A DNA stretch of 63,991 nucleotides, counting the filler, from Ministeria vibrans ATCC 50519 (lineage: Eukaryota; Protista; Filasterea): NCBI GenBank assembly GCA_943704425.1. It is 7 parts of 7 records of this genome, joined end to end, with 100 filler letters (N's around TTAATTAATTAA, not from the genome) between each part and the next. Parts side by side here need not be neighbours in the genome. Positions count along the whole stretch, not along the records: positions 35,829 to 51,884 come from CALSCP010001062.1; 6 more parts are not named here. One strand, 5' to 3'. Both the position numbers and the translations under genes were made by a program. Positions 48,142-51,737 of this stretch are shown piece by piece (within the stretch, counting starts at the first letter, position 1; each line of letters starts with the position of its first letter). The notes beneath the pieces were generated by a model. It was not told where the DNA came from, made no database searches, and was given only the letters and a program-made list of their open reading frames with translations.

Positions 48142-51100
48142 TTAGACCAACACATCGAGCGGTGGCGCCTTCTTCTTTGTTTGCGTCTCATCAGCGTCAT
48201 CTTCATCGTCGTCCGTTGTATCATCGTTGTCAAACTCCTCACAGTCATCCTCACTGCTCGACAACACAGACGTAAACTCACTCCCTTTCTTGCCATTCGT
48301 TGTGCCACTCTCGCCCCCTTTGCTCTTCTGAGTCTTCGCACTCGGTTTGGTCCTCACTAGCTCGGGATTCGTCACCGCAATCTCATCCATCTTCTTCTGG
48401 AAAGCTGCACACACACACACACAACATTAGCGCACACACAGCTGTACGGTAACAATATCCACACAATATTGGTACACGACTGAGCATCACAGTTGCACTA
48501 ACACAAAATCCACACACACACACACCACTAGGCACATTCCGTAGGCTCACACTTTTTCACACACAATCATAAAAACAAATTGCATACCCTCAATGACTTC
48601 GGGACTGTCTGACATGTCGACGGGCATGTCCTCCTCGACATTGATTGCAAACAAGTCAGCGCCCGCATTGACCAGCAACTGCGCCACTTCCAATTGATCT
48701 TCAACAATGGCCAGGTGCAACGGGGTGTTGTTGTCCTTATCCATGGCATTCACGTCTGCCCCCATCTCCAACAGTGCCGCCACCACTTCGACCTGACCCG
48801 CAGAAGAACTCGCGTGCAATGCCGTCTGGTCCAACTCCGTCAGCTGGTCGACAGCCGCACGATTCTGCTCCATCATCGAGCGCATCTCATCCAGTTCGCC
48901 GTCAGCCGCAAGTGCATAGAAGAGCACTTCATCCGTAAACTTCACCGAGCGTCCCGCCTTCTTCTTCTTCGTCGTCGTTGTCGCCGTTGCGTCCATCTCC
49001 GCAGCGTTCTCGCCTGCAGTAGCGTCACTCTCGCCGTCCCCACCAGCGTCACTGTTCTTGTCACCCTTGGTGGTTGGCGTCGTGTCCGACCCTGTTTTGC
49101 CTGTGTCCACCTGATGCTTGCGTGCCAACGCAGGCGATACCATCGAGTCGAGCGCCGGTGGCCCTTCGGAGTCGTCACCAGAGGCAGAGGCAGCTTCTGC
49201 GGTAGCCGTGGGCGATGCTGAGTCGCCAGGGACGGGCGAGACACTCTCGCTCGACTTGCCCATGGCACTGTTGCGTGGTGACCCGATTGGCGAGCCAATC
49301 TTGATGGTGGGCACGTCGCTTGGCGTGCTCGTGGGCGGTGCGGACTTGGCACGCTCAGATGATGTGCCGGAGGAGCCGGCTCCCTTAGCAGAGATGAGGG
49401 AGCGCGCATTGGGCGTAGAGGACTCGGATGAGCTACCATCCCCACCAGTGGCGGCAGTCGGAGACGCATTGTTCAACGCTTGGGCTGCCTGTACGTCGCC
49501 CCACACGTCGACACTGCTCGCAAAGTGACGCTCGTTGGCAATGGCCGTGGCAATTGTGCGGCTCGAGACGGACGTGCACGAGTCGTGACTGCCACTGGCC
49601 AGACCCAGCTCGTCCATCGACGACTCCTTGGACGACGACGACATGTGCATCGTAGTGGGCTCGTTGAAACTCAGGCGAATACCACCGGAAAGCCTCTTCT
49701 CGCGTTGGCTGTCACTCCCATGTGACGACAATCGCTTCTTGCCATGATGCGGGCTCGCTGCAGCCAACGACGATGCTGCATCACGCTCAGGGTAAGGGTA
49801 CCGATAGGCATAGCCCACAAGCCAAAACTGTTGCCCAAACGCATCGCCCCCAATATTGCTACTACTAGTACTACTGCCAATCCCTCCGCCAATGCCTCCC
49901 ATGCCACCATTGACACCCGTCGGCGCGTCGTCCTCGTCTTCGTCCTCTTGGTCCTCGAAAAAGGCAGAGTCAAATGGCGACGCGAGTTCCGGCACAAACG
50001 GCGGTCGCACTACAATAAAAATACAGGCCAAATTAACAATGATATTGTAAGAATGAAAATAAATAGTAATAATAATAATCATTAAAAATAATATTAAAAT
50101 AATATTAAAATAACGGTACTTTTGCGAATGTTGTCAAAGACAATGTTGGCGAAGAATGGGTGTTTGATGAGTCCGTCGTAGTTGAGTCGGTCCTTTTGGT
50201 CAGCGCAAAGTCTATAAAAGAGTGTGTGTGAACAAAGTGAGTGAGTGAGTGTTTATGTGTGTATTTCGTAGTTACGCTCGAATGAGATCCTTTGCAGCCG
50301 AAGAGATTTCCACTTCGCCATCGTCGGGAAACACGAGTGATTTCTACAAAATTTAGATTGTTACATGATGTGATCTGCATTGTGAGTGTGTACTGTGATA
50401 CCTTGAAGTTCTTGATGTTCTTGTAGGTGCCGAGAACGGACTCGGCAAAAAAGGGCGTTTCGCCAACGAGAAGCTCATACATAATGACACCCACAGACCA
50501 CCTAGAGGAGACAAGCAAAGTATTATGCAATGAGACATACTAACAACACAAAAAGGCGCGATATGAAAAAGATCATTCTTATACCAATCGCAATCAGTGC
50601 CATACTGCACTCGTCTGTCACCCTGCATTGCCGACAGCAGCTCAGGCGACATGTACTCGGGTGTGCCACCAGACACATTGGTTGTCACCTATACAAACAA
50701 GACAAGAGTGCAGACACGCACAGAGACAGACACACAGACAGTGAGAGAGAGAGAGAGACACACACACACACACAAACACAAACAGACAGACAGACAGAAT
50801 CTATAATTGTTCACTTTATTTCTTACGTGTCCTTTACTGTTGAGTTTCCCACATGACCCAAAATCGCCCAGAAAAACGTGTCCTTTGTGATTAATATACA
50901 TGTTCTCGATTTTCACGTCACTGCATAATAAAGAATGAATCATGGTCAATAGACACAATCAAAAGTATGTGTTTGTGTGTGTACCGATGAACGTAACCGA
51001 GTTTGTGGACCGTATGGACGGCCTCAATAAGCTGTGCGAGATAAAAGCGCGCCATGTCCTCCCCAAAACGCTCGTGCTTAGTCAACAGACCCAACAGATC

Positions 51101-51737
51101 GCCTTTTAAGAGAAACAAGGAGTGTTTAACAGAGATGAGATGGCGCGTGAAAACTGTGCGTACCTCCTGGGTAGAAATCAGTGATGAGATAAACATTGCG
51201 TTTGTCGTAAAAGGCGTGTTGGAGGGCAGTGATGCCAGGCTCACGCTCGTGCGTGGGCGAGTGCGATCCAGTGGCACGGATCAGCACAGACAGCTCTTCC
51301 TTGTAGCAAGCAGACTGAACACAATGGAGACACAGCGAAAGACAAACAACAGAAAAGAGAGAAAGTAGGGAGAGAGGGAGGGGGAGAGAGAACAGAAACA
51401 CACGTACAGAGACACACAGAGAGAGGAGATACAGAGACACAAACAAAAAGTATCAATACAAACCACTATCACATGAATTCCAGTTCTTGTTTGGGTTTAT
51501 GTTTGGGTTACGTCGGGTCTTCCTTGCAACAGTGACTTTTCCATCTGCTTCACGACCACTGGTCGGCCAGTTATTAAGTTCTTCGCAAGAAAAATCTACA
51601 ACAAACACGATCAACACCCACAATTGATGTAACTGCGTATGGTACCTCTGCGACCGATCCTTGGCCAATCTTTTTTACAATGTCATATTCAGCTTTGAGT
51701 GCGCGCATCTCACGCAACACTTTGACGCGCGGATCAT
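48142..51737 (-). CDS. AGC kinase of DMPK/MRCK/ROCK/citron type fused to an RVxF-ankyrin (MYPT/PPP1R27-like) module; 5' end lost in gap
   Basis: IGQGSVA, VVVK, YKEE, HR|[26 protein letters not shown]|[21 protein letters not shown], then RSVKF + ankyrin repeats (TALH, GADVN, TPLHLA, GADL). Confidence 0.9.

Follow-up and report, generated by a model that had tools for sequence, protein, structure and literature searches.

An apparent DMPK-family kinase and an RVxF-ankyrin module in one gene of Ministeria vibrans

We examined a piece of the genome of Ministeria vibrans ATCC 50519 (Filasterea; assembly GCA_943704425.1) that occupies positions 35829–51884 of the window, i.e. of the whole stretch of DNA analysed (63,991 nucleotides), and corresponds to record CALSCP010001062.1. 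All coordinates given here are positions in the window. The piece is eukaryotic DNA with many microsatellites and short GT..AG introns, and its minus strand carries a gene in which a protein kinase is followed by a long linker, a match to the RVxF consensus for docking of protein phosphatase 1 (PP1) and a small ankyrin domain. We found that this fusion is one protein-coding gene and that it is transcribed as a single mRNA. The kinase part corresponds to an apparently active, catalytically intact AGC kinase of the DMPK family (MRCK/ROCK-like), as shown by its motifs and database matches. Docking of the PP1 catalytic subunit (PP1c) through the RSVKF motif of the C-terminal module is plausible, and we lean slightly towards it and no further, because what supports it is the position of the motif in the sequence and a weak similarity at the family level.

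Gene structure and transcript

Transcript evidence was taken from spliced RNA contigs of three studies (runs X1, X5 and X6) and set against a DNA contig of an independent run (X19). Sequence reading combined with the RNA joints gave 11 exons on the minus strand, from 51737 to 48145, which comprise 861 codons and whose phases all fit. In X1, a single contig of 3184 nucleotides (nt) contained, free of every intron, the 3' untranslated region (UTR), 48000–48404, 48588–50009 and all the kinase exons to 51737, and extended further. In the direction of the gene the nine listed RNA joints have GT..AG ends (CT..AC on the plus strand), and the same joints were recovered in overlapping contigs of the two further studies (X5 and X6), whereas the DNA run covered 48000–50713 in one piece and had no joints. 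Since one contig carries all the parts and the intron-free joints occur in RNA and not in DNA, the fusion is transcribed as one mRNA.

The AGC tail of the kinase and the ankyrin repeats are both encoded in exon 10, a 1422-nt exon without stop codons or intergenic sequence, which the RNA contigs of X1 and X6 cover without a break and those of X5 almost without one. Given the local base composition, the 511-codon open frame at 48547–50082 would arise by chance with a probability of about 1.6e-9. The junction between exons 9 and 10 falls in a skipped repeat and was deduced by counting, since record positions 1835 and 1996 are separated by 160 nt, the sum of 92 and 68. An earlier note on this DNA had placed the kinase and the RVxF-ankyrin module in one chain, and their common exon and common spliced mRNA contig bear this out: the kinase and the ankyrins were found together on the X1 contig and not on separate transcripts. 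The note's uninterrupted exon of about 48590–50010 was also recovered, with its exact limits now set at 50009–48588. The gene, its linker, motifs and domains are laid out as follows:

51646–51737, minus strand: exon 1, starting at an acceptor; apparent end of a ROCK/MRCK-type N-terminal extension, and Gly-rich loop GQGSVAEV (RNA joint 51595/51646, loose RNA end at 51737)
51512–51595, minus strand: exon 2; beta-3 strand with the VAIK-type lysine, VVVKQM (RNA joints, translation)
51164–51314, minus strand: exon 3; alpha-C glutamate (YKEEL) and hinge (RNA joints, translation)
50985–51102, minus strand: exon 4; alpha-D and alpha-E helices up to the His-Arg of HRD (RNA joints, Pfam Pkinase fragment)
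50827–50920, minus strand: exon 5; catalytic loop (D-VKIEN) and DFG (RNA joints, Pfam Pkinase fragment)
50585–50688, minus strand: exon 6; activation segment (GTPEYMSPE) and MRCK/DMPK-type insert (RNA joints, PDB search)
50402–50501, minus strand: exon 7; subdomains IX–X, WSVGV... (PDB search)
50276–50343, minus strand: exon 8; kinase subdomains X–XI (RNA joints, translation)
50120–50211, minus strand: exon 9; end of the catalytic domain, DRL and HPFF (contig arithmetic, GT donor at 50119–50118, weak MRCK alpha match)
48588–50009, minus strand: exon 10, 1422 nt in one open frame; AGC tail, linker, RVxF and ankyrin repeats (RNA contigs, translation)
49804–49821, minus strand: hydrophobic motif LVGYAY of the AGC tail, in the same open frame as the ankyrins (motif reading)
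48970–49782, minus strand: low-complexity linker of about 270 residues, rich in Ser, Ala, Gly and Thr (composition)
48937–48951, minus strand: RSVKF, a match to the strict RVxF PP1-docking consensus, with KKKKAG before it and TDE after it
48589–48933, minus strand: ankyrin domain, three repeats and the first helix of a C-terminal cap (Pfam, structure model, Foldseek)
48142–48404, minus strand: exon 11; coding 48404–48145, stop codon TAA at 48144–48142 (joint 48404/48588 in three RNA runs)
48000–48141, minus strand: 3' UTR, covered by RNA at least to 48000

The gene runs off the end of the contig, leaving its N-terminus outside the piece, and the X1 RNA contig extends about 446 nt upstream of 51737, into one or more exons past the (TC)n contig end. 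Microsatellites of the (TC)n/(GA)n kind form the two ends of the piece, at 35829–35937 and 51802–51884. The contig probably broke at simple repeats, which would be why the 5' exon or exons of the kinase gene are missing. Finally, the sequence of the gene also occurs in seawater metatranscriptomes.

Kinase domain, linker and C-terminal tail

The kinase exons were compared one by one with the sequences of the PDB. Exon 7 matched ROCK1/2 (E 1e-9) and MRCK (4e-8), followed by NDR (3e-6) and DMPK (1e-4). With exon 6, where the insert that follows APE is encoded, the matches that passed E 0.01 were to MRCK alpha/beta and DMPK only, and exon 9 gave a weak match to MRCK alpha. Pkinase fragments were also detected by Pfam in open reading frames (ORFs) of the upstream exons. 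In the exon-by-exon reading all the catalytic motifs were present, namely VVVK, YKEEL, HR and DVKIEN (separated by an exon boundary), DFG, SPE, WSVGV and DRL. The Gly-rich loop is GQGSVA, in which Ala replaces the third Gly, and the catalytic loop reads KIEN, with Ile where most relatives carry Pro (KPDN). Upstream of exon 1, the loose end of the RNA translates as ...NFFKK-Y and is joined to DPRVKVL...AEYDIV, which we take to be the pattern that the N-terminal extension of ROCK/MRCK shows immediately ahead of the Gly loop; about the last 20 residues of this extension are visible (exon 1 and 10 residues from the loose RNA end).

At the start of exon 10 stands PFVPEL...FFED, and LVGYAY comes after a Gly/Ser-rich insert. 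The Pfam Pkinase_C domain did not score on this tail, which was recognised by motif alone, and a PDB search with the tail by itself returned no kinase match because of the low-complexity insert. As for the domains that usually accompany such kinases, no coiled coil, Rho/Cdc42-binding, C1, PH or CNH domain was detected by Pfam, whose matches in exon 10 were all to ankyrin families and which gave none in exon 11. Given these absences and the Ser/Ala/Gly/Thr-rich linker, the protein is best read as a member of the family by its kinase domain, and not as a ROCK or MRCK orthologue by its architecture.

These results agree with the earlier note in assigning the kinase to the DMPK/ROCK/MRCK family, on the matches of exons 7 and 6, and in finding none of the five accessory domains, with which the composition of the linker is in accord. 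The note had also called the kinase complete and had described an AGC tail. The first description holds for the catalytic motifs, which are intact, but not for the N-terminal side, since exon 1 begins at an acceptor and the upstream exon or exons lie beyond the contig end; the second holds for PFVP and LVGYAY, which lie in the open frame of the ankyrins, but found no counterpart in a Pkinase_C score.

The linker (residues 76–346 of exon 10) is composed of 20% Ser, 14% Ala, 10% Gly and 10% Thr, and contains two basophilic KRLS sites shortly after the hydrophobic motif (49726–49737 and 49687–49698). Seven single-base differences separated the window from the RNA contigs of the strain in run X6, which bears a different organism label, and 7 out of 7 were located in the linker (49046–49458; 4 synonymous and 3 non-synonymous), while none was listed in the ankyrin part or in the kinase exons that X6 covers. 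This small sample fits a fast-evolving tether between conserved domains. Exon 11 encodes a basic stretch, then a D/E-rich acidic tail of about 25 residues and a C-terminal DVLV before TAA, and the second helix of the ankyrin cap is probably encoded there as well. The C-terminal DVLV resembles a class II PDZ ligand.

The RVxF-ankyrin module and candidate PP1 docking

RVxF motifs were scored with the strict consensus [HKR][ACHKMNQRSTV]V[CHKNQRST][FW]. RSVKF was the only RVxF-like string in any exon of the chain, preceded by basic residues and followed by acidic ones. With the composition of the exon itself, a strict match would be expected 0.013 times in the 473 amino acids (aa) of exon 10 and 6e-4 times in the 20-residue stretch before the repeats. 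The Pfam domains Ank, Ank_2, Ank_4 and Ank_5 were assigned to residues 390–490 of the 511-aa ORF at 48547–50082 (E 3e-15 to 3e-10). An AlphaFold2 (AF2) model of the module based on an alignment reached a predicted local distance difference test score (pLDDT) of 86 and was used in place of the single-sequence model (pLDDT 46). It contains helix pairs at 20–42, 57–75 and 90–108 and a partial cap that would continue into exon 11, and in it RSVKF is unstructured, of low confidence, and sits one residue ahead of helix 1 of the ankyrins. Foldseek assigned the model to the ankyrin fold, with a template modelling (TM) score of about 0.8 to designed ankyrin repeat proteins (DARPins).

The relationship of the module to the MYPT family and PPP1R27 was examined by several searches. 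With a 55-residue query around RSVKF, the best single-stretch match in the whole PDB was MYPT1 (1S70_B, residues 32–81), at a weak E of 0.13; KVKF of MYPT1 was aligned on SVKF, and the next hydrophobic pair and the Gly-Asp/Glu turn were in register. In the ESM Atlas, PPP1R27 clusters came first for the whole of exon 10 (0.97–0.98), and the first three clusters for the module alone were again PPP1R27 (0.99, with 171–172 shared features). As a control, 100 small ankyrin proteins of generic type were retrieved with the module as query, and 0 of them had an N-terminal RVxF. The earlier note's placement of an RVxF at 48937–48951 immediately before the ankyrins is confirmed (RSVKF at 48951–48937, a strict match that the Pfam Ank domains follow), and a module that is MYPT/PPP1R27-like, as the note has it, appears more likely than a random ankyrin (the top Atlas clusters, the MYPT1 register and the control).

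A number of observations weigh against this kinship and against docking. The match to MYPT1 is weak, the Atlas scores come without alignment or E-value, and RVxF-like motifs are in general frequent false positives. A Foldseek search of the module and a PDB search with its C-cap returned generic ankyrins and DARPins only and did not discriminate, and word-based protein searches with the 127-aa module and with the RVxF/N-cap region returned no named PPP1R27 or MYPT. The myosin phosphatase N-terminal element (MyPhoNE) was sought in exon 10 as RxxQ[VIL][KR]x[YW] and in a looser form, and no match was found. The domain has only about 3.5 repeats; the later repeats of MYPT1 reportedly bind the C-terminal tail of PP1 in the 1S70 structure, and these contacts therefore cannot exist here. 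The absence of MyPhoNE together with far fewer repeats argues against MYPT proper, though as far as we know MyPhoNE is not required of PPP1R27-type proteins.

Moreover, no orthologue was found in HMMER, protein and metagenome searches, all of which have blind spots. Giant ankyrin proteins with many repeats flooded the HMMER search, which was run with exon 10 against 1.84 billion representatives and is uninformative on orthologues. Protein searches with the 511-aa ORF, the 127-aa module and the RVxF/N-cap region returned generic ankyrins or nothing, with no self-match and no fusion, within a length limit of 894 aa that probably shuts out the full protein, of at least 861 aa plus the missing N-terminus; their word sampling is weak for relatives at 50–60% identity, and such blanks say little. 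A scan of metagenome contigs with exact 8-residue peptides gave 39 pattern matches, 0 of them confirmed as related loci.

If the module does dock PP1, RSVKF would, like its counterpart in MYPT1, be exposed immediately ahead of the first ankyrin helix and would insert into the RVxF groove of PP1c, and the ankyrin repeats would supply a second contact, so that the kinase would have a PP1c of its own at the end of a flexible, roughly 270-residue tether. Kinase and phosphatase might then act on the same local substrates, probably regulators of myosin II by analogy with Nek2-PP1 and ROCK-MYPT1, and the KRLS sites of the linker could be internal substrates of both activities. The predicted outcome is a phosphorylation that would be local, short-lived, or sharp and switch-like. 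The self-contained kinase-PP1 switch proposed in the earlier note is plausible, and it stands or falls with the docking. The module may activate PP1, merely tether it or inhibit it, as annotated for PPP1R27.

A different reading, possible in our view though somewhat doubtful, is that the fusion is real and the ankyrins are an ordinary interaction, targeting or auto-regulatory domain, as in DAPK1, RIPK4/ANKK1 and ILK, RSVKF being a chance match that does not bind PP1. Architectures combining a kinase with ankyrins are common (e.g. a chytrid kinase with many ankyrin repeats, P0152, in the protein search), and the generic ankyrins returned by both structural and sequence searches, the missing MyPhoNE and the E of 0.13 for MYPT1 would all suit this reading. 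Chance would have to account, however, for a strict RVxF exactly one residue before helix 1, with basic and acidic flanks and in an unstructured stretch, where the expectation is about 6e-4; the PPP1R27 clusters at the top of two Atlas queries and the lack of such an N-terminal motif in all 100 generic ankyrin matches also speak against it.

It is unlikely, but consistent with part of the same evidence, that the module binds PP1c as a local inhibitor, in the manner of PPP1R27 or of CPI-17, a known local inhibitor of PP1. The arrangement would then be a feed-forward one, with kinase on and phosphatase off in one place, and not an antagonistic switch. PPP1R27 is annotated in UniProt as a PP1 inhibitor, its clusters are the nearest in the Atlas, and the ankyrin domain described here, with about 3.5 repeats, is as short as PPP1R27; in addition, the established action of ROCK on MYPT1 is to inhibit myosin phosphatase. 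On the other side, the present data fit recruitment as well as inhibition, and the papers found on PPP1R27 contain no mechanistic data.

The possibility that the fusion is an artefact (an assembly chimera, a read-through of two genes, or an ankyrin part expressed mainly on its own, as a small protein like PPP1R27, from a promoter inside the gene) is very improbable: contigs can neither reveal transcript starts nor exclude an ankyrin-only transcript, and the 3' contig of X5 had a nominal depth of 91.6 compared to 28.5, 17.8 and 10.9 for the upstream contigs, but the AGC tail and the ankyrins share one stop-free exon with no intergenic sequence, the independent DNA contig is unbroken over 48000–50713 and a single RNA contig holds everything. 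The depth profile does not really point to an independent transcript of the ankyrins, since it drops monotonically from 3' to 5' in X5, as 3' bias predicts, and is level in X6.

Genomic surroundings and relation to known systems

The same piece carries other features. A multi-exon gene similar to GH59 galactocerebrosidase (GALC) lies on the plus strand at 39654–43278 (Glyco_hydro_59, central domain and C-terminal lectin domain). It appears to end in a ricin-B lectin domain (42661–43278; Ricin_B_lectin 1e-15), which would be an unusual addition to GALC. At 37072–38607, also on the plus strand, there is a 511-aa open frame of low complexity, rich in Ser, Thr and Pro, for which no Pfam family reached threshold; it includes a perfect (GACGAA)x14.5 repeat (38014–38100) that encodes a run of (Asp-Glu)n. 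The region that separates the GH59 gene from the kinase gene contains a perfect run of 39 A (44725–44763). A tandem repeat (47243–47532) follows the stop codon of the kinase gene at a distance of about 600 nt; it has a unit of about 52–56 nt (also scored at 66 and 104 nt), 72–87% matches and 2–3 copies, and gives rise to spurious ORFs on both strands.

Compared to MRCK alpha/beta, ROCK1/2 and DMPK, the kinase part shares the catalytic core and the MRCK/DMPK-type insert after APE. It also appears to share the end of the N-terminal extension ahead of the Gly loop and, judged by motif, an AGC tail with PFxP and a hydrophobic xVG[FY]x[FY] sequence. It differs in carrying KIEN for KPDN and Ala for the third Gly of the Gly loop, and in having a disordered linker and the RVxF-ankyrin module in the place of the coiled coil, Rho/Cdc42-binding, C1, PH and CNH domains. 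The module resembles PPP1R27 (DYSFIP1) and the MYPT family (PPP1R12A-C and PPP1R16A/B) in its RVxF directly before the first ankyrin helix and the hydrophobic pair that follows, and it has the size of PPP1R27, whose clusters stand nearest to it in the Atlas. Unlike all of these, it is the C-terminal part of a kinase and not a free-standing subunit, and unlike MYPT it has no MyPhoNE, no C-terminal inhibitory phosphosites and no leucine zipper, with fewer repeats than MYPT1.

Other kinases have features in common with this protein. Nek2 binds its antagonist PP1 through an RVxF of its own (KVHF), and the mutually antagonistic pair has been described as a bistable switch (PMC2018689). The likeness to Nek2-PP1 is that of a kinase with an RVxF in its non-catalytic C-terminal part, where PP1 binds in Nek2 and is predicted to bind here; LMTK2 is another kinase listed as an interactor of PP1. 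Both Nek2 and LMTK2 differ in belonging to other kinase families and in having a bare linear motif without MYPT-like ankyrins. In DAPK1, RIPK4/ANKK1 and ILK a kinase or pseudokinase and ankyrin repeats occur in one chain. These belong to other kinase groups and have more repeats, and we know of no RVxF capping their ankyrins. In our literature search we found no paper on a DMPK-family kinase with an RVxF-ankyrin module. Nothing in the searches, which have blind spots, contradicts the earlier note, which knew of no description of this architecture. The architecture combines known kinds: a DMPK-family kinase, a PPP1R27/MYPT-like module and a predicted Nek2-like logic.

Animal ROCK, MRCK and DMPK reach myosin phosphatase by way of a separate protein, MYPT1. 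The broadest interpretation, which we put forward only tentatively and consider rather unlikely, is that of a single-chain actomyosin device in a non-animal or very unusual marine eukaryote: an MRCK/ROCK-type kinase fused with a PP1 anchor of MYPT/PPP1R27 type, a Rosetta-stone arrangement that would act as an autonomous generator of local phosphorylation pulses. ROCK is reported to be absent from choanoflagellates and fungi, with the earliest ROCK in Capsaspora (PMC4686654), and a protist kinase of the DMPK family whose C-terminal half is different would be of some evolutionary interest. If PP1 does not bind, the protein would merely be another kinase with ankyrin repeats. If the interpretation is true, the pairing of such a kinase with myosin phosphatase would predate the animal ROCK-MYPT1 pathway or would have evolved independently of it, and a natural chain uniting both sides would be independent evolutionary evidence for their functional coupling. 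Such a chain would further offer a compact model for the shaping of local phosphorylation by a kinase and a phosphatase tethered together, along the lines proposed for Nek2-PP1, and could serve as a ready-made scaffold for synthetic signalling.

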